Shown here piece after piece: positions 1-50,160 of a stretch of DNA of 64,000 nt (positions are counted from its first letter, which is position 1; each line of letters opens with the position of its first letter). The position numbers were made by a program, and so were the translations under genes. The DNA is taken from sequence record LT603033.1. One strand, 5' to 3'. The notes under the pieces are model-generated. The model did not search any database. It worked only from the letters and a program-made list of their open reading frames with translations, and had not been told where the DNA came from.

Positions 1-966
1 ATAACTACTGGCATTTAAACCAGTTGCATATACACCAGTACTCGTAACTAGTATACTAGATTGTGTTGGGTATCCTGTATGAATTGAATACAAAGTTCCA
101 GTTGGTAATGTCGTACTATTGCTCCCTAATACAGCAAGTGCCGAACTGGTTGTGGTATTGTTACCCCATGCACCATTACTCGCTAAACCACCAACTAGAA
201 ACTGACGTGCACCAGAACTTGGATTCTCAACCAAAGCACTGACTGCACCACTTGAGCATCCAGTGTATTGTAACGTTTTTGTGTATGTTGTACTTGGTTT
301 ATATAAAGTATATTCATTAAATGGTGTCCATGTGGTACTGGTACTTATACCTGACGTACCACCACCAATATATAAATTATTTTGTGTATCAAAAAACATT
401 ACACAGTTATTTGTTGACTGTATTTGTGCAATATCAACATTAGGCGTGACAGCTTTTACAAATGATCCATCTGTTATTTGTTGAGTACTACCAGTACCAT
501 CAGCGAATTGTCTAGCCCCACTCCAACCAGTACTCCATATTGTATTATTATCCATTAATACCGTAAACCACGTAGTACCTCCATACATCTGTTTAATTGA
601 AGTACTTGAACTTTGCGTGTACAAATTTTCAATATATTGGTTATAACTTAAAAACGTAGTAGTACTAGTTGGTAAACCAACATGATCACCATATCCACAA
701 TAAAAATAATTTGAGTCATTGTCTTTTACTAATAAAGTTCCTTGTGTAAGCCAGCAATCGTTAACGTTTTCTCTAATTAATGTCCATGATTTTAATGCAG
801 TGTTGTTTCCTCTACCGAATTTCCCAAAACTATTATTCCCACGTGCATATAGTTGACCATCCGTATACAGAACCACAACATCTAAATCAGTTGGGATTAT
901 TTTCTTAATTTGAAGTGGTACTGGGGCAATATTCCCATAATTCATCATTCTTGCAAAAGGTAACAT
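1..966 (-). CDS. RCC1/BLIP-II-like repeat protein (3' end outside window)
   Basis: ATG at 966 after GGAGG RBS; reads MLPFARMMNYGNIAPVPLQIKKIIPTDLDVVVLYTDGQLYARGNNSFGKFGRG; same N-terminus as the 7 neighbours; missed by the ORF track because the stop is off-window. Confidence 0.85.
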   Translation of the reverse strand, partial: MLPFARMMNYGNIAPVPLQIKKIIPTDLDVVVLYTDGQLYARGNNSFGKFGRGNNTALKSWTLIRENVNDCWLTQGTLLVKDNDSNYFYCGYGDHVGLPTSTTTFLSYNQYIENLYTQSSSTSIKQMYGGTTWFTVLMDNNTIWSTGWSGARQFADGTGSTQQITDGSFVKAVTPNVDIAQIQSTNNCVMFFDTQNNLYIGGGTSGISTSTTWTPFNEYTLYKPSTTYTKTLQYTGCSSGAVSALVENPSSGARQFLVGGLASNGAWGNNTTTSSALAVLGSNSTTLPTGTLYSIHTGYPTQSSILVTSTGVYATGLNASSY

Positions 967-1035
967 AAATTCCTCCTTTATTCATTATACTATATTTAAT
1001 ACAAATAAGAAAGCCAGTACAGTGTACTGGCATTA
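922..1035 (-). repeat. RCC1-array cassette repeat (terminator + promoter + RBS + first ~15 codons)
   Basis: Hairpin GCCAGTAC-AGT-GTACTGGC at 1013-1031 followed by a T-rich tract on minus, then TAAATATAGTATAAT and AAAGGAGG-ATG. Confidence 0.85.
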
Positions 1036-1037
1036 AA

Positions 1038-2186
1038 TCATTGTATAAATGACATATCAACTTCTGTATAACTAAGAATGTTTTGTCCAGCAATTCCCCC
1101 CATTACTACCATAGCATACCCACAATAATATAATTGCTCAGTGTCCGTAAGTATAAGTGAACCAGATGGAGTGCGTACCAAATTACACGAACTATTAAAC
1201 GAAGTATACGAAGGAGTATATGAGTACTGATTAATATTATTACCAACACCTAATTGACCAAATCCATTCGACCCAGATGCGTATAGAACTTCATCACCTT
1301 TAGCTATATGTGATGCCATGTTACTAACACACGTATATAGAGTATAAACTCCTGAACTCAATAATGTCGGAGTTTTGTATTGTATATCGGTAGATGAAGA
1401 AGTACCACCTGTGCCAAATTCGTTCCCGTATTGTGCACCGAACTGTTTACCACAAGCGTACAAATTATTATCCGATTTAATAAAAAATGTACTCTGATAA
1501 CTTACATCAAAATCTATAACATCTGAAGCAATCATCGTCACCCCAGTAATAGAAGTTTGATTACCTGTACCTAACTGATAGTAATAGTTAAAACCACAAC
1601 CCCATAAAGTATTATCTTCTTTTAGGTATATGTTACCAACTGCCTTTTTAACCGAAGTTATAGTATCTACCCTTTTGAATGTGTTAAAAGAATTAATGTT
1701 TGTACCATCACCAAATGATGATAGGTTCGAGTTATTGTTAACTCCACAACAATACAACGTACCATCGTTTGTTATCAAATTCACCTTCATATCATTAAAA
1801 CTACTCATGTATTTTATATCAGAAACATTAATACCACCTGATGTTATCCACGTAGTACAGTCCGTCCACAAAGTTTTTGTATCAGTTACACCAGTGAATG
1901 CCTTCGTGTTACCAGTGATAAAAACTTTTCCAGTACCTTTCTCTTCATACAATTGACAACTACTACTGTTATCTTCCAATAGAACTCGTTTAACATTCTC
2001 TGCACAAAGAATAAATTTACTCGATGCTACACCTGTTCCAGTACCCCAATTCGTCGCAGAAGATGCATACAACTTATTAGTATAAGTATCATGAAGATAC
2101 ATAGAATCACTTGAATATATTTTAAAACGCCTATCCTTACCAGGGGCAATATTCCCATAATTCATCATTCTTGCAAAAGGTAACAT
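1038..2186 (-). CDS. RCC1/BLIP-II-like beta-propeller repeat protein
   Basis: 382 aa; GxNxxGQLGxG repeats (GFNYYYQLGTG, GSNGFGQLGVG); MLPFARM N-terminus. Confidence 0.85.
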   Translation of the reverse strand: MLPFARMMNYGNIAPGKDRRFKIYSSDSMYLHDTYTNKLYASSATNWGTGTGVASSKFILCAENVKRVLLEDNSSSCQLYEEKGTGKVFITGNTKAFTGVTDTKTLWTDCTTWITSGGINVSDIKYMSSFNDMKVNLITNDGTLYCCGVNNNSNLSSFGDGTNINSFNTFKRVDTITSVKKAVGNIYLKEDNTLWGCGFNYYYQLGTGNQTSITGVTMIASDVIDFDVSYQSTFFIKSDNNLYACGKQFGAQYGNEFGTGGTSSSTDIQYKTPTLLSSGVYTLYTCVSNMASHIAKGDEVLYASGSNGFGQLGVGNNINQYSYTPSYTSFNSSCNLVRTPSGSLILTDTEQLYYCGYAMVVMGGIAGQNILSYTEVDMSFIQ

Positions 2187-2255
2187 ATTTCCCTCCTTTA
2201 TTCATTATACTATATTTAATACAAATAAGAAAGCCAGTACAGTGTACTGGCATTA
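2142..2255 (-). repeat. RCC1-array cassette repeat
   Basis: Near-identical to 922-1035; hairpin at 2233-2251. Confidence 0.85.
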
Positions 2256-2257
2256 TA

Positions 2258-3397
2258 TTATTTCCACGGTAGAAGTGAATCAGGAACCCTTGTTGGTACA
2301 GTAGTTGAAGACATTCCAGTAAGATTGGGTACACCACATGTGTATAAATTATTATATTCGTCAACTAACATCGTATAAGAATAGCTCTTACAAAAACTAC
2401 TAAGATTACTATCTTCTAATGCAGTAAGATCCATTTCAGCGAATGATGTTATATACATATCAGTTGTACCAATACCACATTGACCATTTGAATTAAGGCC
2501 ACATGAAAATAACTTATTATTATTATTAATTATACAGGATGGTCCGGTAAGGTTTGTCCCAAGCTCACCCACCAACTCCACTTCTCCTTGGAATGATAAA
2601 TTTGGAATTAATGTACTCATTGGGGCTACTGACCTATTTCCTGTACCTGCTTGTCCATAGTCGTTAATAGATGCAACTTTAACATTACCATCATTAAGAA
2701 ATATATAAGAAGTTTCATTTGTATTGACTGCTTTAATTGCATTACTAATCGAAGTATCTTGTGTAAATGTGAGCAAGTTTTGTGTCGTCGTTCCTGATAC
2801 AAACGTTCTACCTGCATACCAATATGAACCATCATTTAGTACTAATCCAGTACTATATATTGCACAACCAGCACTGATAACATTTTCTATTGTACTATAG
2901 GTGAATCGTGAAACGCTTGAAGTTGATCCATTCCCAAAAACACCACCAGTACCAGCACCACAGTAGAACCACTTTCCATTTTTTAAAAATACACGCATAC
3001 ACGAAGATATCACAACACTATCAATATCATCTGCACTGACACCGAAATCAGTAAAGTTCTGTGTTATATCAACCCAAACGCCGTTAGTGTTTGAAGATAG
3101 TATTGGAATAACAGTACGTCTACCAGTGTACCAAATAGTACCATCTTTCTTTATAGCAATTGTTCCTTGTACCCCACCCCAATATCGTGTAACATTTGAG
3201 TTGACAAGAGTCCATTCAGTTGAAGAGTCCAATGAACCATTACCACTTTGTCCATATGCTGAAGAACCAAACCAATATAGATTGCCATTTGTGTGTAAAT
3301 AAAATTTGGCATCAGCAGAACATTGTAACCTGTTTTTAGGTAGAATCAGTTCAGGTGCGATATTCCCGTACTTAACCATTCTTGCAAAAGGTAACAT
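2258..3397 (-). CDS. RCC1/BLIP-II-like beta-propeller repeat protein
   Basis: Start trimmed to the conserved MLPFARM ATG behind the RBS; repeats GSSAYGQSGNG, GLNSNGQCGIG. Confidence 0.85.
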   Translation of the reverse strand: MLPFARMVKYGNIAPELILPKNRLQCSADAKFYLHTNGNLYWFGSSAYGQSGNGSLDSSTEWTLVNSNVTRYWGGVQGTIAIKKDGTIWYTGRRTVIPILSSNTNGVWVDITQNFTDFGVSADDIDSVVISSCMRVFLKNGKWFYCGAGTGGVFGNGSTSSVSRFTYSTIENVISAGCAIYSTGLVLNDGSYWYAGRTFVSGTTTQNLLTFTQDTSISNAIKAVNTNETSYIFLNDGNVKVASINDYGQAGTGNRSVAPMSTLIPNLSFQGEVELVGELGTNLTGPSCIINNNNKLFSCGLNSNGQCGIGTTDMYITSFAEMDLTALEDSNLSSFCKSYSYTMLVDEYNNLYTCGVPNLTGMSSTTVPTRVPDSLLPWK

Positions 3398-3465
3398 ATT
3401 CCCTCCTTTATTTGTTATACTATATTTAATACAAATAAGAAAGCCAGTACAGTGTACTGGCATTA
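3352..3465 (-). repeat. RCC1-array cassette repeat
   Basis: Same cassette; hairpin at 3443-3461. Confidence 0.85.
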
Positions 3466-3467
3466 TG

Positions 3468-4577
3468 TTATTTTGGTAAATCAATTTTAGTAAAGACTGC
3501 AACATCCTCGATTGCACCTGGAATGGCGTAATACGATCCAGTACTATACACATCTCCATTTTTGGTTAATATCGATGTCAAACCATCACTAAAAAGAACA
3601 TCCCTAATCTCACTAACTTCAACGGGTAATTGTAAATTGGTAGCACTATATATAGCACCAGTTTGAGAATTGTTTAATCCCAAACCACGGTTCGCCCCAA
3701 CACCCTTCTGATATGTACTAGTAATTACCATTTGTGTAGCAGTATTTAAGGCAGGTGAATTCGTCATAAACAATGGAGAACTATTAGGCAAAGTACTTAA
3801 AGGAACTGCACGGAATGTAGTCGTACCTGAACTAAGAAAGTTTGGAGTTTGACCACATACGAAATATGATGTACCATTATAGTAATTTAATGCATTACCA
3901 CCAATGGCTGCATCGATTACACCAGAACTACGCAATCCCCAAGTGTTAATTTGTGTTTGGTTCCCCGTACCATGCTGCCCACTACTATTCCATCCAGAAC
4001 TATATAGCTTATTATCTAATGTAAGATACATACTATCATTCGCATTGGTCATTACTTTACGAACGTTCGTAGCACATTGAGTTAATGTGTAAATTGATGA
4101 GGAACCAATACCCAAAGAACCACGATATCCATTATCTCCTGCACCATAGAGTACTGAATTAGTGCTAAGTACAAATATTAAACCATTTGTACATACAATA
4201 TTAGCAATTTCACTTACTGGTATAGCATTGGTAAACCAATTAGTTCTTTCAACTAATACAGTACTGTAAGAAGTAGTTGTAGAAGATGAGAACCAGTACG
4301 TTTGACCTGATGTCCATATCGTATTATCATTTTTAATAATAACAAGTGTACGATCACCCACGAAAAAATTAGAAACATCTGCACTTACTAATGTCCACGA
4401 AGACACCGTGTTGGTATTACCATTTCCAGATTCACCACCTTGATTTCTACCTATGTAATATAAATCATGTGAATCAGTCAATAAGAATTGGCCTTGGGTA
4501 GAAGCACCAACTTTAATTATTTTTTTAGGACCAGGGACAATATTTCCATACCTAATCATTCTTCCAAAAGGTAACAT
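3468..4577 (-). CDS. RCC1/BLIP-II-like beta-propeller repeat protein
   Basis: Start trimmed to MLPFGRM; repeats GRNQGGESGNG, GWNSSGQHGTG. Confidence 0.85.
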   Translation of the reverse strand: MLPFGRMIRYGNIVPGPKKIIKVGASTQGQFLLTDSHDLYYIGRNQGGESGNGNTNTVSSWTLVSADVSNFFVGDRTLVIIKNDNTIWTSGQTYWFSSSTTTSYSTVLVERTNWFTNAIPVSEIANIVCTNGLIFVLSTNSVLYGAGDNGYRGSLGIGSSSIYTLTQCATNVRKVMTNANDSMYLTLDNKLYSSGWNSSGQHGTGNQTQINTWGLRSSGVIDAAIGGNALNYYNGTSYFVCGQTPNFLSSGTTTFRAVPLSTLPNSSPLFMTNSPALNTATQMVITSTYQKGVGANRGLGLNNSQTGAIYSATNLQLPVEVSEIRDVLFSDGLTSILTKNGDVYSTGSYYAIPGAIEDVAVFTKIDLPK

Positions 4578-4585
4578 ATTCCCTC

Positions 4586-5788
4586 CTATTGTTGCCATAA
4601 CTGCGTTGGCATTAATGTTAGTGTAGTAATACTATAAGTACCATTAGGTAATCTACCACCATTTCCATTCCAGCCACCACATGCATATAATTTATAATCT
4701 TTAGTAATTATTATGGTTCTGCTCCAATCTTTAGATGCCATAAGAACATTGTCATAACCACCACTTATTGCACTAAGATTAAAAATATTCCAAGTTCTAA
4801 CTAATGTATTAGTTCCATTACCTTCTTGACCATATGAGTTAGCACCACTACTTCTAACATATGGTGCGTATTGTGCCATAGGTGCACCAATTGATGCATT
4901 TCCCATATTACTTGGACAAATAAAAGTACTGTACTTACTTACATCAACCGTGACCGATGTGTTCCTAATTGGTGTTAGCTGATTTACCGATGTAGTCGTA
5001 CCATTACCAGCTTGTCCAGTACTGTTAGCCCCGCTATAATATACAGACCCACCAGTAGTAAACCACCAAGTAACATCGTATGTAGTACTAATATGTTCTA
5101 CATTACTAATCACGAATTTGTTCAAATATACAACAGAACTACCACCACATCCACTTTCACCAAAGTTATCCTTACCACAAAACCATGCATCTTTATTTGA
5201 TTTGATATAGTGCGTTCCTTGTAATGAACATGCCATATGTGTAACTTCACCCATATTAGTCATAACTGTGAGTGTAGGGATGGAATTTTTATTACCAGAG
5301 CCACATTCACCATTGGTATTTCTTCCACACGCAATTACTCTACCATCGGTTAATAATATTCTAGTACTTTCACCTATATATACACTCTTGATCATATTAG
5401 CCATAACACCTATTTTATTAAATGCAACAGTAACATCAGTCCATGTTGTCAAATAACCATTAACAGGTGTTGCATCTCCATAATCAGAAAATGCACCCAC
5501 AGACCCAGTGTAGTATATTTTATTATCCAAATCAATCATCAATGAACCTTGAACACCAAGCCAAAAGGCTGCACAGTTCCTTGCAAGTACTGTAAATGAC
5601 GAAACTGCTGCTGAATTCCCAAGACCAAATTGATAAAAGTTATTACTACCATAACCATATAAAGTATTAGTTGGGTTATGGAGATACATACAGTTTGTAT
5701 AATGTTGTTGTAAAACATCTGAGAACTCTACAGGTTCTGGACCTGGTGCAATATTTGCGTACTTAACCATTCTTCCAAAAGGTAACAT
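4586..5788 (-). CDS. RCC1/BLIP-II-like beta-propeller repeat protein
   Basis: 400 aa; repeats GSNNFYQFGLG, GRNTNGECGSG, GANSYGQEGNG. Confidence 0.85.
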   Translation of the reverse strand: MLPFGRMVKYANIAPGPEPVEFSDVLQQHYTNCMYLHNPTNTLYGYGSNNFYQFGLGNSAAVSSFTVLARNCAAFWLGVQGSLMIDLDNKIYYTGSVGAFSDYGDATPVNGYLTTWTDVTVAFNKIGVMANMIKSVYIGESTRILLTDGRVIACGRNTNGECGSGNKNSIPTLTVMTNMGEVTHMACSLQGTHYIKSNKDAWFCGKDNFGESGCGGSSVVYLNKFVISNVEHISTTYDVTWWFTTGGSVYYSGANSTGQAGNGTTTSVNQLTPIRNTSVTVDVSKYSTFICPSNMGNASIGAPMAQYAPYVRSSGANSYGQEGNGTNTLVRTWNIFNLSAISGGYDNVLMASKDWSRTIIITKDYKLYACGGWNGNGGRLPNGTYSITTLTLMPTQLWQQ

Positions 5789-5855
5789 ATTTCCCTCCTT
5801 TATTCATTATACTATATTTAATACAAAAAGAAATGCCAGTATCAAGTACTGGCAT
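5741..5855 (-). repeat. RCC1-array cassette repeat
   Basis: Same cassette; hairpin ATGCCAGTA-TCAAG-TACTGGCAT at 5833-5855. Confidence 0.85.
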
Positions 5856-5859
5856 AATA

Positions 5860-7038
5860 TTATCGGTTAAATTTAAAATCTGTTATGTGTGTCCATGTAT
5901 GATTTAATGGGGTACTCATTGGTGTAAAGCCAGCAGGGTCTGACCACGTTGAACCACATGCGTACATAAATTGATTGCCAGTACAATCCATTATAGCATA
6001 AGAACGTGTTGCTGTACCACATTTGAATCCAACTGCACTACTTGGGGTCGGTAATACTTCAAATGTAGGTGCATTTGAAGTATTACCCCCATTTTTTGTT
6101 CCAGCTATGTACAGAACTCCATTAGTATCAATGATTAAGTTAGTCCAATATGCTTGTTCTCGACCAGCATAAAAATATGTTAAATCACCGGGTACAAATG
6201 GTAACGTACCTTTATATAGTGTAGTATTAACATCCACTGGTGCTCCAGATACACCCCATGAACTCATATAGTTTCTCCCACTTGCGTAGAATGTAGTTCC
6301 TTTACCGTAAAGTATTAATGTTGCATGACTTGTTCGCATTGCATTATATTCAAACTCAGGATCATCAGTAGCGTCCTTAAAAATCTGTGTCCATGTTGTT
6401 ATATAGCCAGTAGTTGTAACACCCATTTGATAATAATAATTATCACCAGTAGCATAGAATTGTTTAGGGCCAGTTTGTACAATTGCATTCCTATTAGTTA
6501 ACCAAAAATCTAATGTATTAGTCATGATCTTGGTGGGTGTGAAATTCGCCACGGTATTTCCTTTTCCGAAATAACCCTTAGCGTTATCTCCATGACCCCA
6601 TAAATCACCATTAGTTGTGCGTAGGAATAATGTACCAGAATTGAATACAACTTTTTCTATAGTACTTATATCAATACCAACAGAAGTGTAATTCGTTGTA
6701 AAATCTTGAAAAGTACCCCAAAAATTAGATGAACCCTTAAACATGACTTGACTACCAGCGTACTTCACTTTATTATCTTTAGTGATAAGTAATGTCCCCC
6801 ACGATGCCGCGAACATTAACTTAACATTTTCCATAACAAAGTATGGCTTACCGTATGCTGACGCGGTAGAGTTCAAACCTAATAGTTGTCTATTATTACT
6901 ACAACCCCATACTTCGCCGTTATCCAAAAGCATCAACATAGTAGGTTTACCAGATAATACAGACAAAAAGAAATCTTTTGGTGTTGGTACACCAGGTGCA
7001 ATATTCCCATAATCAAACATTCTAACAAAAGGTAACAT
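5860..7038 (-). CDS. RCC1/BLIP-II-like beta-propeller repeat protein
   Basis: Start trimmed to MLPFVRM; repeats GDNAKGYFGKG, GDNYYYQMGV. Confidence 0.8.
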   Translation of the reverse strand: MLPFVRMFDYGNIAPGVPTPKDFFLSVLSGKPTMLMLLDNGEVWGCSNNRQLLGLNSTASAYGKPYFVMENVKLMFAASWGTLLITKDNKVKYAGSQVMFKGSSNFWGTFQDFTTNYTSVGIDISTIEKVVFNSGTLFLRTTNGDLWGHGDNAKGYFGKGNTVANFTPTKIMTNTLDFWLTNRNAIVQTGPKQFYATGDNYYYQMGVTTTGYITTWTQIFKDATDDPEFEYNAMRTSHATLILYGKGTTFYASGRNYMSSWGVSGAPVDVNTTLYKGTLPFVPGDLTYFYAGREQAYWTNLIIDTNGVLYIAGTKNGGNTSNAPTFEVLPTPSSAVGFKCGTATRSYAIMDCTGNQFMYACGSTWSDPAGFTPMSTPLNHTWTHITDFKFNR

Positions 7039-7103
7039 AATTCCTCCTTTATTCATTATACTATATTTAATCAAAAAGAAAAGCCAGTATCAAGTACTGG
7101 CAT
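6991..7103 (-). repeat. RCC1-array cassette repeat
   Basis: Same cassette; hairpin at 7083-7101. Confidence 0.85.
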
Positions 7104-7107
7104 CGTA

Positions 7108-8217
7108 TTACTTGGGTAATGGAATTGTGGTCCATCTATTTGCGGCAACGTCACCTGGTACATATGTAGGACTACCACTTACAGCAATAGTTTCATTACC
7201 ATCATATACAACACTGAAGTTTGTGCACGTATACAACGCTGCGGCATCTGGATTGTAATTTTCAAGTGTTAGTGTATTGGTGAACAAATTCAATGCAGTA
7301 GTTGAGCCGTTTTTACCATATGCACCTGTAGTATATATCTTTCCTTCTGTTGTTGAGTACATATTAACATATGACCCAGATGATGATTTAGCAATTTTAT
7401 CTATCTTGCTATCTATTGTTTTAGAGTTAAATTGAAATGGATATACCTGTACGTTAGTATCTAAACCATTTCCCAGTTCCCCATTTAACTGCCACCCTGT
7501 GTGGTACATTCCCGCATTTGTATATGCAAGCGTACTATACGCATTACCACCCATTATTTTAGTGCCAGATAATTTTAAACCAAACGATGTCCACTTACCA
7601 GTTTCATTTCCTATGGAACCATAAGCACTTGTACCACACGCACGAAGCTCGCCATTTGACGTTAGAAGCACTGTATTATTAACGTTACCAAATATATCAA
7701 TAACCTGATTAGTGCCATTATTCAGTACTGAAGTAAAAGTACTCTGTGAGTAAGTACTACCTGAACCAACAGAACCATTTGTGTTCATACCTCTTCCATA
7801 TACAATTTTACCATCAGCACTAACATAGTGCATTGAATCAAAACCAATGGATATCATTTTAATATCAGATATATCTGGAAATGAAGAAGTTACATCTACT
7901 CCACCTAGTGGAATTGTATTATTTCCTAAACCTAATGAGACATTAGTTCCGTGCATTATAAATTTATCTTCTTTAAAATATAAAATATTATATCCACCAG
8001 CCCATGCATTATTAACGCCATTTGTAATCAGTACCCATTTATTTTGTGTAGTAGTTCCAGTAATATTTAACTGTTGATAGTTATTGATTCCACAACCATA
8101 TAGCGATCCATCACCATATAGTACATATAAATTATCATATCCTGCAATAACTTTCTTTATTTTTTTGGGTACAGGTGCTACATTCCCATACTTTAACATT
8201 CTTCCAAAAGGTAACAT
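7108..8217 (-). CDS. RCC1/BLIP-II-like beta-propeller repeat protein
   Basis: 369 aa; repeats GINNYQQLNI, GMNTNGSVGSG, GWQLNGELGNG. Confidence 0.85.
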   Translation of the reverse strand: MLPFGRMLKYGNVAPVPKKIKKVIAGYDNLYVLYGDGSLYGCGINNYQQLNITGTTTQNKWVLITNGVNNAWAGGYNILYFKEDKFIMHGTNVSLGLGNNTIPLGGVDVTSSFPDISDIKMISIGFDSMHYVSADGKIVYGRGMNTNGSVGSGSTYSQSTFTSVLNNGTNQVIDIFGNVNNTVLLTSNGELRACGTSAYGSIGNETGKWTSFGLKLSGTKIMGGNAYSTLAYTNAGMYHTGWQLNGELGNGLDTNVQVYPFQFNSKTIDSKIDKIAKSSSGSYVNMYSTTEGKIYTTGAYGKNGSTTALNLFTNTLTLENYNPDAAALYTCTNFSVVYDGNETIAVSGSPTYVPGDVAANRWTTIPLPK

Positions 8218-8282
8218 TATTTTCTCCTTTATTCATTATACTATATTTAATACAAAAAGAAATGCCAGTATCAAGTACTGGC
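8171..8282 (-). repeat. RCC1-array cassette repeat
   Basis: Same cassette; hairpin at 8264-8282. Confidence 0.85.
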
Positions 8283-8288
8283 CTGTAT

Positions 8289-9425
8289 TTAAATTATTGT
8301 TGGTAATGGTAATGGTATAAATTCATCACTCGATGGCAAACCATATAACGTAGTTGCATTTCCAGAATAATACCATCCCGTTGAATCTTGCACTATAGAT
8401 AGATAGGCTAACGATGCCGCCTTTGTTATATCATTAAACCCGTGTGGTACTTCTTTAAATGTAGATGAATATTCAACACCAGGGTCACCAGAAGATAGTG
8501 TAGTGTTAGTACCAGCATAATATAAAGTATTGCCATCTGTGCTTATAGCAAAAGAAAGAACAGAGTTATTCATATCACTCCACAAATCCCTAAACCTGCC
8601 TCTATATCCGGTTAATTCTGTATACGAATATACGTTTGTGGTATTTGAAGAAGAATTACCTAGTTGATAATTTCTATTTTGACCTGCTATAACATATCTA
8701 GTGCTACCATTAGTATCATAATATAATATACCAGAGTTTAATGTTGACATACCAACTGCACATTCGGATGCAAATTCGGGAGCAGAGTACAAATTATAAG
8801 AAGTTAAATTTGTGCTAGTACCCAATGCTCCAGTATTGCTTATACCACAGCGGTAGTAACCACCAGTAGTACTAGAATATATAGTACCAGGTAGAGAAGT
8901 GTAGAATTTTGAAACATTTGACGCAACTAATACAGCATTAACTTTGCTTGTTGAACCACCAAATGTTTGGTTATTATCATATCCTTTAGCATATAATCTA
9001 TTATCATTTGTAAGTAATCCTACACAATAATAAGTCATTTTCATTTCACGTACTGTGCTTAGATTCACTGCACTAAATTGTGTCGTAACATCTTTCCATG
9101 TAACAACTTTAGAACTTGTCGAACCACCAGATTCAAACCATTCATCACCACAGTAGAAAATTTTATTATCTACAGTTAATACAACGCATACTAAATTACT
9201 AGCACAAGCAAACTTAACATCATCTCTAACTTTAGTCCACTCGGTTACATTCACTATAGTATCAGTTCCTATACCTAATTTGCCATACGCATTATTACCA
9301 CGCACCCATAATTCATTATCCTCGGTTATTAGTAATAATGAATTAGTACCTGCAACAATATCACGAACTTTTAGTTTTTCTGGTGCTACGTTCCCATAAT
9401 TTAACATTCTAACAAAAGGTAACAT
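8289..9425 (-). CDS. RCC1/BLIP-II-like beta-propeller repeat protein
   Basis: Start trimmed to MLPFVRM; repeats GNNAYGKLGIG, GQNRNYQLGN. Confidence 0.85.
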   Translation of the reverse strand: MLPFVRMLNYGNVAPEKLKVRDIVAGTNSLLLITEDNELWVRGNNAYGKLGIGTDTIVNVTEWTKVRDDVKFACASNLVCVVLTVDNKIFYCGDEWFESGGSTSSKVVTWKDVTTQFSAVNLSTVREMKMTYYCVGLLTNDNRLYAKGYDNNQTFGGSTSKVNAVLVASNVSKFYTSLPGTIYSSTTGGYYRCGISNTGALGTSTNLTSYNLYSAPEFASECAVGMSTLNSGILYYDTNGSTRYVIAGQNRNYQLGNSSSNTTNVYSYTELTGYRGRFRDLWSDMNNSVLSFAISTDGNTLYYAGTNTTLSSGDPGVEYSSTFKEVPHGFNDITKAASLAYLSIVQDSTGWYYSGNATTLYGLPSSDEFIPLPLPTII

Positions 9426-9473
9426 AAATCCCTCCTTATTCATTATATCATATTTACCCCATAAAGAAAACCC

Positions 9474-23451: not shown

Positions 23452-23589
23452 ATGAATCCTAACGGTATAATTTACAGTACTCCTAAAACGAAAGCAGACA
23501 AGGTAAACGCTAAAAAAGCGAAAGTAAAGGAGTACATCAAGCAAGGCATGACGCGAAAGGCGGCGATTCTAAAAGCTAAAAATAAATGA
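23452..23589 (+). CDS. small Lys-rich protein (45 aa)
   Basis: Adjacent to the upstream stop; KTKADKVNAKKAKVKEYIKQG. Confidence 0.5.
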   Translation: MNPNGIIYSTPKTKADKVNAKKAKVKEYIKQGMTRKAAILKAKNK

Positions 23590-23591
23590 AA

Positions 23592-23627
23592 AAAGTGGTT
23601 GACTTCGGTCAGCCATTTTGCTATTAT
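23592..23627 (+). promoter_or_regulatory. composite terminator hairpin / promoter
   Basis: AAAAGTGGTTGAC-TTCG-GTCAGCCATTTT hairpin contains -35 TTGACT, then 17 nt to TATTAT. Confidence 0.7.
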
Positions 23628-23633
23628 ATATTC

Positions 23634-23682
23634 ATTGAGAGATAGCTCACTAGCCCACAGGGTGCAGGAGTGTATCTATTGT
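23634..23682 (+). ncRNA. candidate R1 element
   Basis: TGAG-AGATAG-CTCA hairpin; AGCCCACAGGGTGC at 23652-23665. Confidence 0.5.
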
Positions 23683-23800
23683 ATAATGTTTGAGTACTGA
23701 AAACTATTTTTAAAAAAGTACTTGAAAACTATCTCAATTGGCGTATAATGTTTTACATCGCAAGGGGAAACGGTTTCCCCTGGTAATAAGGAAACGAATC

Positions 23801-24142
23801 ATGACTATCTCAATTGCTCAATCTAACTTTGAAAATGAAATCATCGCCCAGGTACTGCGTTTAAATGATGGTCGGGCCGAAATTAATTACGGTTTCAATT
23901 CAGGCGGTTGTGAAAACTATCAGTACTTTGTAACGGCTGATGGCGGTGTCCTGGGCATCAATACAGTTATTGTAAACATCCAAAAAATTAATTTCAATGA
24001 TCCAGACGATAGCCAGTTTTACATCACTGGCGTAGACGTGAACTATGAGGATGACTCACTAACTGATGATTACACTGGTGAGCGGTTAGAAAGTGCTTAT
24101 GGTGAAGATGATTATCAGTCAGTACCGGAAGATTTCGAATAA
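23801..24142 (+). CDS. acidic hypothetical early protein
   Basis: Start trimmed to MTISIAQ; D/E-rich C-terminus. Confidence 0.75.
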   Translation: MTISIAQSNFENEIIAQVLRLNDGRAEINYGFNSGGCENYQYFVTADGGVLGINTVIVNIQKINFNDPDDSQFYITGVDVNYEDDSLTDDYTGERLESAYGEDDYQSVPEDFE

Positions 24143-27042: not shown

Positions 27043-27188
27043 AAGAATTCTTATTTGAAGTAGTGTTTCAAGGTGTCGGTAATAACCAACTGATTCGCTC
27101 AAGTGGTTACAATGTTAACCAGGCATGGAATAACATTAAACAAATGTACCCGAACGCTATCACATATCGCAACCCGAAAGAAGTTTAA
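27039..27188 (+). CDS. small hypothetical protein (49 aa)
   Basis: GAGG RBS, ATGA overlap. Confidence 0.55.
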   Translation: MKEFLFEVVFQGVGNNQLIRSSGYNVNQAWNNIKQMYPNAITYRNPKEV

Positions 27189-27240
27189 AAATAATTGAAA
27201 AAGGGATTGACTCCGGTCAGTCCCTTTGCTATTATATACG

Positions 27241-27285
27241 CATAGAAACAAATCAGCCCACCGGGTGCATAAATGTATCTATTAT
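27241..27285 (+). ncRNA. candidate R1 element
   Basis: Composite hairpin/promoter AAAGGGATTGAC-TCCG-GTCAGTCCCTTT; AGCCCACCGGGTGC at 27255-27268. Confidence 0.5.
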
Positions 27286-27360
27286 ATGCTGGTGGCTAGT
27301 ACTGAAAACTATTTTTAAAAAGTACTTGCATTGTACTTAGAATCAAGTATAATGTTTTAC

Positions 27361-27433
27361 ATCAGGACGGGGAACGAAACAAGTAACCCCGTTAAGTAGT
27401 CCAGGAGTAAGACATAAGAAAACCTCCCCTGAT
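27361..27433 (+). ncRNA. candidate R2 structured RNA
   Basis: ATCAGG/CCTGAT, ACGGGG/CCCCGT and GGAG/CTCC stems; paralog of 17966-18040. Confidence 0.55.
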
Positions 27434-27865: not shown

Positions 27866-28048
27866 ATGGCTAAGTGCACTATCTGCAAGAAAGAAATAGT
27901 ATTAGTTCCAAGTGCCCGTGAACGTGCCGCTCGGTTCGGTGGCAAAGCGTCAGACTATACAAAAATGTTTACTACCCATACAGCTTGCCAGGTAGCAAAA
28001 CGTTCACAAGAAAGCGTAGAATTAATGCGTAAACTTTCCAAAAAATAA
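27866..28048 (+). CDS. small Cys/His (putative Zn-binding) protein
   Basis: CTIC...HTAC; promoter at 27782-27809. Confidence 0.7.
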   Translation: MAKCTICKKEIVLVPSARERAARFGGKASDYTKMFTTHTACQVAKRSQESVELMRKLSKK

Positions 28049-28136
28049 GTATTGACAAAGTATCTTAGTACTGTATAATAGTTTACATCAAGTGAGGGGA
28101 AACGGTTCCCCTCCTAACAAAGAGAGAGAAATAAAA

Positions 28137-28460
28137 ATGGCTATGATCCTTGCCCAGAAAGTGGAACTGAAAATTGTAACCTCCTTTGACATTAATGTTA
28201 ATCGGTGGACTGATTCACACGGCAATACTTACCACTCTTGCTACGTGTCTGCGTTAATTGGCGACCGCTGGGAAGACCTGGGACACGAAACCTTTACATA
28301 CGGTTACGGTACACAAGGCGAATACACGGGCTTGGAGATCATTAAAGAAACCGTTATAGGTTTCAACCCGAAAGAAAAAGTTATTCACCGCATCGAGGAA
28401 GAGATCAACAAAGAAATAACAGTTCGCTACCACGATGTAAAACGTAAGAAAGACATGTAA
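28137..28460 (+). CDS. hypothetical early protein, paralog of 21703-22026
   Basis: RWTDSHGNTYHSC, FTYGYG. Confidence 0.8.
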   Translation: MAMILAQKVELKIVTSFDINVNRWTDSHGNTYHSCYVSALIGDRWEDLGHETFTYGYGTQGEYTGLEIIKETVIGFNPKEKVIHRIEEEINKEITVRYHDVKRKKDM

Positions 28461-28555
28461 TAGAATCCATTTAAAGTACTATTTGACATTGCCCAGATAG
28501 TACTTTATAATAGACTCTAACTTGTAGTACTAACTCAACTAATAGGATGTATACC

Positions 28556-28951
28556 ATGATTACTAAATTCTACGCTACCCGTGAAGCTGCCCGTATTGTT
28601 GCACGCGAGGAAGGAGCAGCATTTAAAGACATGGGCAAAGATGCACCGAAAGGTCAACGCTGGGCCGTACAGTTCAAAGAAATCTCTGATATCGTGAATT
28701 CACCGGAGCCAGTACTAACAGCAGCAGAACTAAAACGAGCGGATTTACTGGCGGCAGTACTTAACGCACAAGATGAATTTATCGCTGATTCTGATATCAA
28801 AGTACAGACAAACCATACCGCTTGGACTCACGCGGATCACCTGGCAAACCTTAAGCGTCCAAGTGAACTGGTTCGCAACCAGAAAGAGATCCGACACGAC
28901 CGTAAGGGTAATCGTGTAACAGTATACAGTAAACGCCGCCAGGTTATCTAA
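28556..28951 (+). CDS. hypothetical early protein, paralog of 17099-17365
   Basis: KFYATREAAR...FKDMG...DRKGNRVTVY; terminator GGCGGGA-TCAGT-TCCCGCC-T6 follows. Confidence 0.8.
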   Translation: MITKFYATREAARIVAREEGAAFKDMGKDAPKGQRWAVQFKEISDIVNSPEPVLTAAELKRADLLAAVLNAQDEFIADSDIKVQTNHTAWTHADHLANLKRPSELVRNQKEIRHDRKGNRVTVYSKRRQVI

Positions 28952-29013
28952 TAACTTGCAGTACTAACAACACGGCGGGATCAGTTCCCGCCTTTTTTAT
29001 AGGATAAACTAAA

Positions 29014-29268
29014 ATGATTAAGGTACAACTATCTAAAGATAATATCTTGCGGGTACACTATAAAGCACCACAGAGAATCATCACAAAGGCCGTACAGCTT
29101 GCTAATGAGTTTATTAATGGTAACCTATTACCAAGGAAGTTAAGCAACGGAAAACTGCGTGTAATCGATGTAGATACTAACAACAGAATAGTAATTGAGA
29201 ACACAGGAAAGATAAACCTATATGAACACCAACAATATAATAAGAAAATAAAACTAATATCACGTTGA
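29014..29268 (+). CDS. basic protein resembling RelE/ParE-fold phage proteins
   Basis: PRKL...VIDV...RIV...LYEHQQYNK pattern; recalled resemblance only. Confidence 0.5.
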   Translation: MIKVQLSKDNILRVHYKAPQRIITKAVQLANEFINGNLLPRKLSNGKLRVIDVDTNNRIVIENTGKINLYEHQQYNKKIKLISR

Positions 29269-29321
29269 CAGTACTCAATTGTTTTAGTATTATGTACACA
29301 TACCAACACGGGAGAAACAAA

Positions 29322-29540
29322 ATGAAATTATCTAAAATCGAAAAGAAAACTATTGATGAAGCAGTTAAGCACGGTTATACCTTTCGTAATGATTCACATT
29401 TTACCAATTTTCAACAAGGCCAAAGGACTATTAAAAAACTAATTGACAAAGGTTTATTAGTTAAAGTAGATAACGGTAACGGCATTGAGTATCAGCCAAC
29501 CCAAGACACATTATCTTTAAAGAAATATGCAATTATCTAA
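29322..29540 (+). CDS. hypothetical protein (possible winged helix)
   Basis: GGAG RBS; TIKKLIDKGLL. Confidence 0.7.
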   Translation: MKLSKIEKKTIDEAVKHGYTFRNDSHFTNFQQGQRTIKKLIDKGLLVKVDNGNGIEYQPTQDTLSLKKYAII

Positions 29541-29597
29541 TTGACAGTACTCAAATGTTTTAGTACTATATGTACATACCAACACGGGGAAAACAAA

Positions 29598-29840
29598 ATG
29601 ATTACTTTAGAAAAACGTATCAAAGAAACTACATCGCTGGTGGAACTGTTAACAGTACTGAAATGCCGTACTACTCGGTTTAGTACACCGGACTTTATTA
29701 ATATGGTTGATGTTAACGGTCGTTATCGCATTGCAGTAGAACAAGGAACAGCGAAAGTATTCAGTACTAAAAACACTAAGGAAGTGATTCACGCTGTAAG
29801 TGTTAAAAAAGTAGTTGCCATTGATAGTAAAGTACTGTAA
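29598..29840 (+). CDS. hypothetical early protein
   Basis: Upstream region duplicates that of 29322. Confidence 0.7.
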   Translation: MITLEKRIKETTSLVELLTVLKCRTTRFSTPDFINMVDVNGRYRIAVEQGTAKVFSTKNTKEVIHAVSVKKVVAIDSKVL

Positions 29841-29871
29841 GATAGTTTCATTAACTCAAGGAGAACATGCA

Positions 29872-30456
29872 ATGCGTAATTATACTAAATTCATCCGTAC
29901 ACTGTCAGAAATGGAAACCAACAAAGAGATCCTTTCAGCTTGTCGGTTAGCTGGTCTGGAGATCATCGGTGCGGGTTCTTCCCGTATTGTATTCGCTTTA
30001 AATGATCGGTTAGTGATCAAGGTCGCGAATTGTGATGCGGGTGTAGAACAAAATGAAACTGAATGTAAGGTATGGAATTTTTTAGATTATGACCGCCCTC
30101 AATTGAAACAGTACTTTGCAAAGGTGCATATGCATTTATGCGATCCTGATAATATGTTTATCGTTATGGATCGGTTGAGTACTGCAAGTAAAGGCAGTGT
30201 GAAGCACGTTAACGCGTGCAACGAATTAAAGTACAATATTAAACGTAATGCCATTGAACGCCAGCACCGCTTTGCTGATGCACTACAACACGTCGATGAT
30301 ACATTATCAACACTAACGATAAGAGATATCAGAAAACAGAATATCGGCCAGGATCGTAATGGCCTTATTAAAGTACTTGATTACGGTTTAACCCGCAATA
30401 TCTGGAATCAGTACTATAAAAAGCGTGATGTAAAAGCCGTAACTATAACACGATAA
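29872..30456 (+). CDS. protein kinase-like protein (Ser/Thr type)
   Basis: Ordered motifs: IGAGSSRIVF (Gly loop), VIK, QNETE (alphaC Glu), RDIRKQN (catalytic D...N), DYG; AAGGAG RBS. Confidence 0.8.
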   Translation: MRNYTKFIRTLSEMETNKEILSACRLAGLEIIGAGSSRIVFALNDRLVIKVANCDAGVEQNETECKVWNFLDYDRPQLKQYFAKVHMHLCDPDNMFIVMDRLSTASKGSVKHVNACNELKYNIKRNAIERQHRFADALQHVDDTLSTLTIRDIRKQNIGQDRNGLIKVLDYGLTRNIWNQYYKKRDVKAVTITR

Positions 30457-30508
30457 AAAAGATTAAAAAAGGGATTGACTCCGGTCAGTCCCTTTGCTAA
30501 TATATATT

Positions 30509-30557
30509 CATTGAGAGATAACTCACTGACCCACAGGGTGCATAAGTGTATCTATTA
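30509..30557 (+). ncRNA. candidate R1 element
   Basis: Composite hairpin/promoter at about 30468; TGAG-AGATAA-CTCA; GACCCACAGGGTGC at 30528-30541. Confidence 0.5.
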
Positions 30558-30687
30558 TATAAGTATTCAGTACTGAAAACTATTTTAAAGTATTTGATAA
30601 AAAGTACTTGCATTGTACTTAGAATCAAGTATAATGTTTTATATCGAGAGGGGGAAATGGTTCTCCCTGGCAATAAGGAATAAAATC

Positions 30688-30909
30688 ATGACTACAATGA
30701 CTTGCATTTACGCTTCCAATCTTCTGAATGATGCGGCCTTTAATGTTGATTCAGAATATCAATGTTATCGGGATGAAAATAAAAAAGTTTTTGTAGTTGA
30801 TAATAATGGTTTCCATATTGAATTACAATCCGGTTTCACTGGTGTTGATGGTAAATCAGTATGGGGCGTACAGGATGATAAAGGCACATATCATTTTAAA
30901 CGTAATTAA
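30688..30909 (+). CDS. hypothetical early protein
   Basis: Promoter TTGCAT-16-TATAAT at 30608-30635; start trimmed. Confidence 0.75.
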   Translation: MTTMTCIYASNLLNDAAFNVDSEYQCYRDENKKVFVVDNNGFHIELQSGFTGVDGKSVWGVQDDKGTYHFKRN

Positions 30910-30993
30910 GTATTGACAAAGTATCTTAGTACTGTATAATAGTTTACATCAAGGGGAGAATAGTTCTCCCCGATACTAAAAGGAAACAAAATT

Positions 30994-31266
30994 ATGTCCA
31001 GCTACTCCGCTACTATGATCATTAAAGATATGAACGGTAATCCTACTTCTGCTGGTGGATCATTTGGAAACATTAACTTAGATGGTCGGTTATCAATTGA
31101 ATCAGCCATCAATGCAGCGAAAGAAGTTTTTAAGAATGAATGTACTGTTAGTAAGCTGGATTATATGGGATTCGCTATCGAGAAAACTACTCGTTTTGTG
31201 AACTACAAAAATCCACTGATGATTGATACTAACCTGAAAGCTAACGAAGTGGGGTACTTATTATGA
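30994..31266 (+). CDS. hypothetical early protein
   Basis: Own promoter, hairpin, AGGA RBS. Confidence 0.75.
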   Translation: MSSYSATMIIKDMNGNPTSAGGSFGNINLDGRLSIESAINAAKEVFKNECTVSKLDYMGFAIEKTTRFVNYKNPLMIDTNLKANEVGYLL

Positions 31267-31454
31267 CAGTTGAAGAAGTTAAAAAAGTACTGGCAGTACT
31301 ACGCTATCATAACCATTGCAAGGTTAAGAATGATCCTGATTATGTTGATTCATCCCTGGAGGAAGACACATTAAACGCAATAAGCCATATGCAAACATTA
31401 GCAAAGCGTATGACCGAAAAGAATAGACCGGACTATATCGGAAATAAAATTTAA
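31263..31454 (+). CDS. hypothetical protein
   Basis: ATGA overlap. Confidence 0.7.
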   Translation: MTVEEVKKVLAVLRYHNHCKVKNDPDYVDSSLEEDTLNAISHMQTLAKRMTEKNRPDYIGNKI

Positions 31455-31540
31455 AAAGTACTTGCATTGTAGTTAGATTAACGTATAATGTTTTACATAG
31501 AGCGGGGGAATAGTTCTCCCGCCAGTCCGGGAGATACACC

Positions 31541-31807
31541 ATGAACACTATCGAAATCACTATCAATGCACACGTATACGACAACGTAGTACTGCAAACT
31601 ACTATGACCGCTAATGATACCAGTACTTTGCGGAATACCGTTGTAAGTGCTGTATGTGCTGCAATCGGTGATGTAGCCCTGGAAAATGCAGAACACATCA
31701 ACAACGGTTTCACTATGTGCAAACGTGATAACGCAAAACATATCATCTTAGAAGGTTACGGCGGTGTAGAATATAATCTTTATATGAAAAAAGTACTTGC
31801 AAAGTAA
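31541..31807 (+). CDS. hypothetical early protein
   Basis: Promoter at 31462-31489, GGAG RBS. Confidence 0.75.
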   Translation: MNTIEITINAHVYDNVVLQTTMTANDTSTLRNTVVSAVCAAIGDVALENAEHINNGFTMCKRDNAKHIILEGYGGVEYNLYMKKVLAK

Positions 31808-31872
31808 CTAAAACAAAGTATAATGTTTTGCATAGGGGGAGATATCCTCCCCCACTAATAAGGAGTACTAAA

Positions 31873-32097
31873 ATGGCTAACTTTGATGAACTGATGCGGG
31901 AAGTAGCTAACCTGGCAGAAGAGAAGAAATCATTCGATTCTATCTATAACACCGCTTACAGTGATTCAGTACTGGCATGTACTCAGGATCAAAAAGATGA
32001 ACTAATCGCCACATATCATGAAGCATGGAAGTACTACCGCCAATGGGAGAAAGAAGAAAGCGAGTCTACCATCAACGGCATCAATAATCTAATCTAA
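31873..32097 (+). CDS. hypothetical early protein
   Basis: Promoter at 31797-31824, AAGGAG RBS. Confidence 0.75.
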   Translation: MANFDELMREVANLAEEKKSFDSIYNTAYSDSVLACTQDQKDELIATYHEAWKYYRQWEKEESESTINGINNLI

Positions 32098-32172
32098 AGT
32101 TTTATTTCAGTACTATTGACATAGCTTGATAGTACTGATATGATAACTTTACTAACTACAAGGGGAAACATC

Positions 32173-32430
32173 ATGGAACAATTCACACAATATCGGGTAA
32201 ATCCTCAAGCTATGGCCTACGTAGAAGACCATAAAACGTTACCAGTACTGCAACCAGTTAAAGGCCATATCTATCGTGCGATGGCGTGGAGTACTGCCCA
32301 GGATGGCTATAAAACCGTTGCCGTTGGTATGTACTGCGGTAATGGTGAATGGTTTGATCCAAATAATCCGGTAGCAATTGACAGTACTGAAAAAATGAAA
32401 TGGGCCGACTACATCGAAGATATTTCATAA
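32173..32430 (+). CDS. hypothetical early protein
   Basis: Start trimmed to MEQFTQY. Confidence 0.75.
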   Translation: MEQFTQYRVNPQAMAYVEDHKTLPVLQPVKGHIYRAMAWSTAQDGYKTVAVGMYCGNGEWFDPNNPVAIDSTEKMKWADYIEDIS

Positions 32431-32520
32431 AAACTATTTGACAGTACTAACCAGTAATGTATAATGTTTTACATAGAGCGGGGGAATAGTTCTCCCGCCA
32501 ATAGTTTGGAGTAAAACATT

Positions 32521-32721: not shown

Positions 32722-32776
32722 CAAAAAAGAATAAAAAAGGGATTGACTCCGGTCAGTCCCTTTGCTATTATATACG

Positions 32777-32820
32777 CATAGACAAAAACTAGCCCACAGG
32801 GTGCATAGGTGTATCTAAAA
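32777..32820 (+). ncRNA. candidate R1 element
   Basis: Composite hairpin/promoter at about 32738; AGCCCACAGGGTGC at 32791-32804. Confidence 0.5.
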
Positions 32821-32964
32821 TATATAGTTAATAACGGTGAGTAACTATCTGCTGGTGGAGTGAAAACTATTAATAAAAAGTATTGACAAAGTATATCAGT
32901 ACTGCAATAATGTATCTCGTAGGGCGGCAATGGTGCGACGGTCCACAAAGTTAGGAGATTCAAA

Positions 32965-34066: not shown

Positions 34067-34257
34067 TGCGTAAAGGGATCTAGTACTGATTCAGAAAAAA
34101 GTCAAGGCGTTTTTAAAATTATGCGTTAAAAAAATGCATAGGTAATCCCTTGACTTTTTTGAAATAAAAGGGATTGGACTATGGCAAAATGCGTAGGGGG
34201 CTAAAGGGCGGGTAACCTTAGCGACTTCGATAAAGGGGTATTACGAATAAAATGTTA

Positions 34258-43961: not shown

Positions 43962-44468
43962 ATGAATGAGATAGAATTATTAGCACACAAGATTAGTACA
44001 GTAATGCTTATGCTCAAGAATAATCATTCTATGCATAAGTACATTTATATAGGTGATTTACGCATAGAAGATAGATATGATAAATTATCGTTTTTGTTTA
44101 AAGATGAAAGTAATGCAAAAGTTTGTTTTGCAGCATTTGCCCAAGGCAATCCAGAACAAGCATCTCCTGTTATATACGAAAATAGTGAAGGGTATTTGTG
44201 GGTCAACACAAACGATTATTTCTTTTATGATTTGAAACAAAATGATGAAGTAGAAGCACGAATTGATTTAATTGATATTAGTTCAGATTGTAGTTCTGAA
44301 TTATTTCAGAAATCGTTATTATACAGTCCTCGTCAAATACATTATCTAAAGTTATTCAGTTCATTGTACGCGAATCCTTTAATTAAGGGTTTTAAATTTT
44401 ATATCAAAATTCCGTACCTTTCAAACGTTTATGATATTTTGATGCAAGGATATAGTTATGAAGTATAA
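43962..44468 (+). CDS. family C protein
   Basis: SSELFQKSLLYS. Confidence 0.8.
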   Translation: MNEIELLAHKISTVMLMLKNNHSMHKYIYIGDLRIEDRYDKLSFLFKDESNAKVCFAAFAQGNPEQASPVIYENSEGYLWVNTNDYFFYDLKQNDEVEARIDLIDISSDCSSELFQKSLLYSPRQIHYLKLFSSLYANPLIKGFKFYIKIPYLSNVYDILMQGYSYEV

Positions 44469-44769
44469 AATGATGTATACCCCAGATATGATTTATGTTG
44501 AATTAGAAGATGATGACGATGGGTGGAATTTGATTTATTCAAGAAGTTCAGGTTGGTACATGGCACATTTAAATGATTCGATAGTTACAGATTATTTTGT
44601 AGATTTCAATACATTATCCGATGAAGAATTGTTCCAACAGCAATTAGTGATTGACACGGGTGGTTATGATGTCTTATTATTAAAAAAGATACAGAAAGCT
44701 GTTATTGATTTTAAGCCCATGATATGGCAAAGGAAATATTATGACCTCGAAGTACCGTACCAGCAATGA
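44458..44769 (+). CDS. family C protein
   Basis: LSDEELFQQQLVID. Confidence 0.8.
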   Translation: MKYKMMYTPDMIYVELEDDDDGWNLIYSRSSGWYMAHLNDSIVTDYFVDFNTLSDEELFQQQLVIDTGGYDVLLLKKIQKAVIDFKPMIWQRKYYDLEVPYQQ

Positions 44770-50105: not shown

Positions 50106-50160
50106 NNNNNNNNNNNNNNNNNNNNNNNNNNNNNNNNNNNNNNNNNNNNNNNNNNNNNNN
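50106..50160. other. assembly gap (55 N)
   Basis: Run of N flanked by GC-rich tracts. Confidence 0.99.

Follow-up and report, generated by a model that had tools for sequence, protein, structure and literature searches.

The kinase of phage T7, gp0.7, is a proven protein kinase although its build is as truncated as that of the protein described here; its promiscuity has been linked to a DPV motif, and an inhibitory autophosphorylation site lies after this motif (PMC13645617). The enzyme has recently been shown to disarm many bacterial defences through mass phosphorylation, and depletion of Ser, Thr and Tyr in early proteins is a published signature of phages that carry a hyperpromiscuous T7 kinase. 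T7-kinase homologues with a DP motif have already been listed for the jumbo phages G17 (Asteriusvirus) and Munch (PMC13645617). The paper on Sharanji distinguishes a T7-kinase homologue, WNN14432.1, from a second protein, WNN14351.1, which it names in one sentence as "another protein kinase" and to which it assigns no function (PMC11895373). The latter is the orthologue of the protein considered here, and that sentence is the sole mention of its family (phrog_4301) found in a literature search, which returned no functional study.

The gene lies in a stretch of 64,000 nucleotides (hereafter the window) of LT603033.1, the 348-kb genome of Escherichia phage vB_Eco_slurp01 (Asteriusvirus PBECO4). 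Positions are those of the window, obtained by subtracting 62000 from the position in the record. The segment 29000-31500 matches the slurp01 genome at 100% identity and the remaining Asteriusvirus genomes listed at 93-97.5%. An open reading frame on the + strand begins with the ATG at 29872 and its stop codon ends at 30456 (194 aa plus stop), which is also the extent of the annotated CDS PSLUR01_00204, a "hypothetical protein" in the record. A ribosome-binding site read from the sequence, AAGGAG (29858-29863, + strand), stands 8 nt 5' of the ATG. The likeliest reading, to which we assign a probability of roughly 0.55, is that of an active minimal protein kinase, expressed at the start of infection and acting on host proteins. 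The parts of it with direct support are the fold, the intact catalytic residues, the purifying selection, the family and the position among early-type promoters.

That the protein is kinase-like is already known from database records and one paper. Several relatives bear names such as "putative protein kinase", "protein kinase domain-containing protein", "PknA" or "PRP4", and the record of Klebsiella phage Muenster cites an HHpred match of 99.9% to 6J5T_M. As far as we have found, the family, its separation from the T7 kinase, the invariant residues, the tandem fusions, the position in terminal repeats and the small neighbouring gene have not been described together before.

Catalytic motifs and predicted fold

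The original prediction had read GAGSSR, VIK, a glutamate, DIRKQN and DYG in this order within 194 aa. This reading is exact; it agrees with the annotated CDS, and the core residues are conserved in the family. The glycine loop GAGSSR (residues 33-38; 29968-29985) carries R38 at the place of the third glycine of GxGxxG. In VIK (residues 48-50; 30013-30021), K50 is the ATP-phosphate-binding lysine and aligns with the VAIK lysine of MST1. The helix-C motif QNETE (30049-30063) holds E64 (30061-30063), the partner of this lysine, along with Q60 and N61, a family-specific signature. The catalytic loop DIRKQN (residues 152-157; 30325-30342) provides D152 as the catalytic base, and DYG (residues 170-172; 30379-30387; all on the + strand) is equivalent to DFG, with its metal-binding Asp. 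Beyond DYG the polypeptide continues for 22 residues and has no second domain. The abbreviated C-lobe devoid of a regulatory domain, likewise part of the original prediction, is thus borne out, and a short C-terminus is found family-wide.

Single-sequence matches are marginal. The PDB yields an E value of 0.013 for the part between catalytic loop and DFG, while NCBIfam yields 12.7 bits with the PknB model, whose cut-off is 450. A family profile was therefore required, and the alignment of 49 members served as such. Against the PDB this profile retrieves 1094 distinct sequences at E<=1; the 60 matches listed are all protein kinases or aminoglycoside phosphotransferases, MKK4 being the best (E 1e-6). 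Its alignment with MST1 spans profile positions 7-183 and places the glycine loop, Lys, helix-C Glu, catalytic loop and DFG in register. The AlphaFold2 model computed from the same 49-member alignment (pLDDT 95.3, pTM 0.91) starts with a pair of N-terminal helices. Three strands, the long helix C and the hinge strand come next, then helices D and E; from the catalytic loop, two short strands lead to DYG and to a single last helix (175-182). Among the matches listed for three PDB fold searches, all are kinase-like folds or SAICAR synthetase, a structural relative. They include CDKL1 (Z 9.3), ULK4 (Z 8.7), APH(2'') (Z 8.0-8.5), PRPK/Bud32 (Z 8.1), RIO (Z about 7) and the Ark1 RNA kinases (Z 6.7-7.1). 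The glycine loop, the Lys-Glu pair, the catalytic Asp, the DFG Asp and the bilobal fold that characterize the protein-kinase-like superfamily are all present in the sequence and the predicted structure, which confirm the kinase-fold gene as genuine, beyond chance. A more specific candidate, the PD-T4-6 kinase proposed by PADLOC, was rejected; its weak matches (E 2e-4) fall in the C-lobe stretch from the catalytic loop to DFG and reflect general kinase similarity.

Like the Hanks-type Ser/Thr kinases (MKK4, MST1, PknB, YabT), among which are the best sequence matches (E 1e-6), the slurp01 kinase has subdomains I-VII in order, with the glycine loop, VAIK Lys, helix-C Glu, hinge, DxxxxN and DFG. 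Unlike them, it has neither the His nor the Arg of HRD, and it carries an invariant Arg for the third loop glycine and an invariant Gln-Asn pair in helix C. Subdomains VIII-XI of the Hanks/PF00069 domain (activation segment with APE, helix F, helices G-I) are absent from both the protein and its model. No His-Arg precedes the catalytic Asp in the sequences of the family displayed, where the activation segment is also missing. A reduced C-lobe lacking an activation segment is shared with Bud32/PRPK, RIO and Ark1, whose sizes are 170-260 aa, but no specific sequence relationship to these was found and their Z scores are no better than those of ordinary kinases. The bacterial effector kinases OspG/NleH and HopBF1 are small kinase-like proteins of about 200 aa with a comparable reduction; OspG and HopBF1 do not appear among the matches listed, the best 50 per fold search.

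Conservation was scored on 162 full-length domains in 141 proteins. R38, K50, E64 and D170 are present in every one (162/162 each), G172 in 161, Q60 and N61 in 159 each and D152 in 158; G57 and G159 share with the last four a conservation of at least 97%. D-[YF]-G is found in 145 of the 162 domains. In contrast to these positions, mean identity within the family is 23%. The position of the catalytic-loop Asn (N157) is variable; 56 domains have N there, and H, S or Q is found in 46, 35 and 20 domains, respectively. In five Asteriusviruses, dS of the kinase gene reaches 0.06-0.21 and dN/dS is 0.01-0.21; the amino acid changes all lie past DYG, at R175 and residues 188-192, except C90S in Turkey3. 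The invariant residues and the low dN/dS point to an active phosphotransferase, as far as sequence can predict one. Downstream of the DFG glycine, the 126 single-domain proteins have a median of 23 residues (at most 40 in 80% and at least 100 in 2.4%). An annotation or truncation artefact was rejected as the origin of the short C-terminus since this feature is family-wide and the stop codon is kept in the five Asteriusviruses. Four residues past D170, position 174 is Thr or Ser in 116 of the 162 domains; by loose analogy with the autophosphorylation site of the T7 kinase, one may speculate that it serves self-regulation.

These figures bear on whether the protein might instead be a pseudokinase, an ATP-binding scaffold or an enzyme of other chemistry (e.g. 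AMPylation) that acts by binding a host factor. Such a function would fit the extreme loss of helix F and of the remaining C-lobe core, as well as the frequent substitution of the metal-binding Asn in relatives; ULK4 and IRAK3 (Z 7.0), both of them pseudokinases, also rank among the top structural matches. However, pseudokinases normally miss at least one of the catalytic Lys, Glu, Asp and DFG-Asp, whereas here no domain has lost the Lys, the Glu or the DFG-Asp and all but four retain the catalytic Asp despite the low overall identity, with the whole core under purifying selection. We regard this alternative as very unlikely.

The substrate class is not fixed by the fold because APH, RIO and Ark1 reach Z scores similar to those of protein kinases; indeed, no kinase subfamily is clearly ahead of the others. 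The same ATP site could thus serve a small-molecule or nucleic-acid kinase that has no protein substrate and phosphorylates a metabolite, a nucleotide signal, a cell-envelope sugar or RNA. Aminoglycoside or choline kinases and the archaeal tRNA 2'-kinase Ark1 are models for such an enzyme. The APH(2'') match extends over model residues 1-189, the Ark1 enzymes are of similar size (173-216 aa), and the elements with which eukaryotic-like kinases hold a peptide (activation segment, P+1 loop, helices F and G) are all missing. A charged small ligand could find its pocket among the invariant residues R38, Q60 and N61. In addition, phage CBB has two adjacent paralogues, CBB_444 (194 aa) and CBB_445 (168 aa), which lie among tRNA genes. 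Conversely, the sequence profiles put MKK4, MST1, PAK and PKC first and APH lower (E 3.7e-5), the sequences displayed have no His at the second position ahead of the catalytic Asp, and the protein lacks the C-terminal substrate subdomain typical of APH and choline kinases. The aminoglycoside 2''-phosphotransferases do share the bilobal ATP-binding fold over nearly the whole model, but they possess about 100 extra residues that make up a helical antibiotic-binding subdomain, as well as a conserved His before the catalytic Asp, and their profile match is weaker. Neither the HxDxxxxN motif nor the C-terminal helical substrate-binding subdomain of PF01636 is found in the slurp01 protein, and the fold match is confined to the shared core. 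Finally, the T7 kinase is just as truncated and is yet a protein kinase (PMC13645617). On balance a non-protein substrate is rather doubtful, and protein phosphorylation remains the preferred activity.

The phrog_4301 family and the T7 kinase

The slurp01 kinase matches phrog_4301, a family of "unknown function", with an E value of 8e-42; the 49 aligned members all match this PHROG too. A word-indexed search retrieved 13 close relatives, none of which has a Pfam domain on record, and an exhaustive search retrieved 285 cluster representatives at E<=1e-3; many additional small kinase-like phage proteins are found in BFVD and the ESM Atlas. The gene is present in 62 sequenced-phage records, mostly of Rak2-like jumbo phages. 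These comprise Asteriusvirus, Alcyoneusvirus (RaK2, K64-1, Muenster), the group of Munch, 7t3 and SE_PL, the Erwinia phages Hallingskeid and Kaldavass, Xanthomonas phage XbC2, and EJP2, GAP32, fHe-Yen9-03, fHe-Yen9-04 and CBB.

In a set of 161 proteins, consisting of the window protein and its retrieved relatives, the domain occurs as two tandem copies in 11, three in 6 and four in 2. The multi-copy proteins are metagenomic phage relatives in which a complete kinase domain is repeated within one polypeptide, and their catalytic loop reads GDxxxxHWG. One of the three-copy proteins is encoded on a contig of 149 kb that holds numerous small ORFs.

The original prediction saw in this protein a jumbo-phage counterpart of T7 gp0.7. 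The true T7-kinase homologue of slurp01 is another gene (record 44018-44689; 224 aa; PF27024, phrog_15752), which has a TDP motif and is located 18 kb before the start of the window. Perfect sigma-70 promoters abound in its surroundings too, a second such stretch (record 6.5-47 kb). The corresponding Sharanji protein, WNN14432.1, matches phrog_15752 ("protein kinase; inhibitor of host transcription...", E 1e-97) as well as the kinases of T3, JSS1, Berlin and hundreds of T7-like phages, and 24/24 of its relatives carry PF27024.1. The phrog_4301 protein of slurp01, in turn, has no match to the T7-kinase PHROGs (phrog_15752, 2828 and 18305); a single protein among the 49 of the family has a match to phrog_15752 (E 7e-4). 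With the phrog_4301 HMMER profile, T7 kinases score at most 14.8 bits, versus 32 bits for eukaryotic-like kinases, and the comparison of the two families by HMMER yields at most 19 bits. The two kinases of slurp01 are barely alignable pairwise. T7-kinase homologues at E<=1e-15 are confined to 30 phage records, and at E 1e-15 none was found in RaK2, K64-1, Muenster, CBB, GAP32 or XbC2, all of which have the phrog_4301 kinase.

A distant relationship is suggested by hhalign, which aligns the two families with 94.8% probability (E 5e-8, 143 columns) in a region that includes a (K/R)xAGLxxxGxG stretch common to both, ahead of the glycine loop. Because ordinary kinases score similarly or more strongly, this value may mean superfamily membership and nothing closer. 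The model also superimposes with a TM score of 0.65 on an Atlas viral cluster, 11% of whose members carry PF27024, compared with 0.52-0.53 for ordinary kinases and APH.

Like T7 gp0.7, the slurp01 kinase is phage-encoded among early promoters of the host-RNA-polymerase type, and both proteins begin with helices, which are followed by an N-lobe and by a C-lobe extending only some 20 residues past the DFG position, with no activation loop. They differ in that the slurp01 kinase has a helix-C Glu, a GxGSSR loop and DYG instead of DPV/DP, and has no shut-off or DNA-binding C-terminal domain. A further difference is that it co-occurs with a true T7-kinase homologue in one genome. Neither the PF27024 family match nor the DPV/DP motif is found in the protein, which is a DYG kinase of phrog_4301. 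The prediction of a gp0.7 counterpart must therefore be abandoned, the family being a distinct one with the same truncated build, in a genome whose PF27024 homologue is another gene and with HMMER scores of at most 15 bits. This corrects an easy mis-assignment; in such genomes the equivalent of T7 gp0.7 is a different gene.

The protein could still duplicate the function of gp0.7 as the original prediction implied, i.e. be hyperpromiscuous and disarm nucleic-acid-binding defence systems. The common build and early-type setting, the profile-profile alignment with its shared stretch and the TM score to the viral cluster are in keeping with this. Against it, a T7-kinase homologue marked by PF27024 and a DP motif is already encoded in the genome, while the protein itself has no Pfam match, falls in a different PHROG and lacks a DNA-binding C-terminal domain. 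It also retains the canonical DYG, promiscuity being tied to DPV (PMC13645617). Moreover, the neighbouring proteins show no depletion of Ser, Thr and Tyr; the content in the terminal-repeat stretch (see below) is 0.176 versus 0.185 in the rest of the genome (p 0.19), and 0.53 is the p value in a size-matched comparison, this being a weak test on 602 genes from rough gene calls. A functional duplicate of gp0.7 is, in our view, unlikely.

It is possible, though clearly short of probable, that phrog_4301 constitutes a separate and widespread class of ultra-minimal kinases (about 165-195 aa) which has dispensed with the helix F-I core. R38 and the Gln-Asn pair would replace the missing elements that hold the substrate or its phosphate. 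In Rak2-like jumbo phages, such a kinase would be a first-expressed effector encoded in the terminal repeats with a dedicated small partner, and its targets would be unlike those of the T7 kinase and might even be non-protein, e.g. a nucleotide signal or RNA.

Early setting, small neighbour and proposed action

In the closely related phage vB_Ec-M-J (OQ718158.1), the direct terminal repeat of about 21.5 kb is annotated at 1-21525. By blastn it corresponds, at 90-97% identity, to a stretch of the window that starts at 14519 and ends near 34220, the right boundary being approximate; this stretch consists of small + strand genes and includes the kinase gene. The window contains ten perfect TTGACA-N16/17-TATAAT sites, where 0.2 would be expected. 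All of them are on the + strand, between 14884 and 32465, and hence inside the 19.7 kb equivalent to the terminal repeat. Genome-wide there are 26 such sites, again all on the + strand. Orthologues of the kinase occupy similar places. That of vB_Ec-M-J is within the annotated terminal repeat, 16.7 kb from the genome end, that of Muenster is within a 20-kb repeat, and a match in fENko-Kae01 also falls under annotated terminal repeats. Repeats of about 21 kb have been confirmed with restriction digests in fEgEco12 (PMC13070987), and small-ORF regions rich in RpoD promoters have been proposed as the early region of CBB (PMC5259590). CBB_444 and CBB_445 fall inside that region. The term "early" in the original prediction is thus supported by the dense consensus sigma-70 promoters and by the equivalence to a terminal repeat, which place the kinase gene in a predicted early region.

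The local order is promoter, 80-aa gene, kinase gene and hairpin. The nearest promoter 5' of this two-gene unit is sigma-70-like (TTGACA, 17 nt, TACTAT; 29541-29569, + strand; 10/12 matches) and is a copy of a repeated promoter module, another copy of which is at 29265-29293. Right after the stop codon of the kinase gene comes a terminator-like hairpin (30468-30495, + strand; -21.2 kcal/mol, z -6.6 versus shuffles), which overlaps the next promoter-like site. In a comparison with 28000-32500, contigs from RNA libraries (wastewater and others) cover the gene, but DNA carry-over is possible and such contigs are evidence of neither transcription nor strand nor timing. One of these contigs corresponds to 29387-30491 and ends in the terminator hairpin, such contigs carrying no transcript-end information.

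The 80-aa gene directly 5' of the kinase gene (29598-29840, + strand) is a conserved neighbour. Salmonella phage Munch and Erwinia phage Hallingskeid have homologues in the same position (37.5% and 35% identity, respectively), and the three proteins share invariant FST and STxN motifs. The 80-aa protein has no match in PHROG or the PDB. In a fold search its best Z is 4.7, none of the matches attaining Z 5 (model pLDDT 75, from a shallow alignment). It is possibly a partner or a substrate of the kinase.

From the fold, the residues and the setting we infer enzymatic activity, a protein substrate, a time of expression and a biological role, which may be combined as follows. The sigma-70 promoters in the terminal-repeat DNA would let host RNA polymerase transcribe the kinase gene as soon as infection begins, and the 80-aa upstream gene would probably be cotranscribed. 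Mg-ATP would be held by the glycine loop, the K50-E64 pair, N157 and D170, and its gamma-phosphate transferred via D152. Since the activation loop, the HRD arginine and helices F-I are missing, the enzyme would need no activating phosphorylation and would have no dedicated peptide-docking platform; general kinase knowledge would then suggest that it is constitutively competent. R38, Q60 and N61, around the mouth of the active site, probably help to hold the phosphate or the acceptor. The targets are likely host proteins, possibly phage proteins, and their modification would serve host takeover or counter-defence, a role that is a reasonable inference. The kinase would act alongside the separate T7-kinase homologue of slurp01.

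Asteriusvirus, Munch-like and some other jumbo phages thus have a T7-kinase homologue plus a second minimal kinase, the latter in terminal repeats. The targets of the slurp01 kinase, if known, would tell whether large phages in general rely on early phosphorylation for takeover or counter-defence, and also down to what size a kinase domain can still work.

Several other features of the window may be recorded. Repeated intergenic modules with promoter and hairpin elements, 80-90% identical, are found at 30432-30694, 27186-27374, 23577-23807 and 32723-32828. The promoter copies at 29265 and 29541 create spurious TTG-start ORFs with near-identical N-termini. At 29014-29268 (+ strand) is a gene for an 84-aa protein of phrog_1525 that is 65% identical to Muenster gp041, for which the depositors give the annotation of a putative ribonuclease toxin resembling YafQ. 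At 50106-50160 the window is masked (55 N). Positions 1-9443 hold eight - strand ORFs of 322-433 aa, which separate the two + strand promoter-rich regions; two ORFs of this block were scanned, and both belong to the RCC1-like phrog_4219 ('regulator of chromosome condensation') by their matches.
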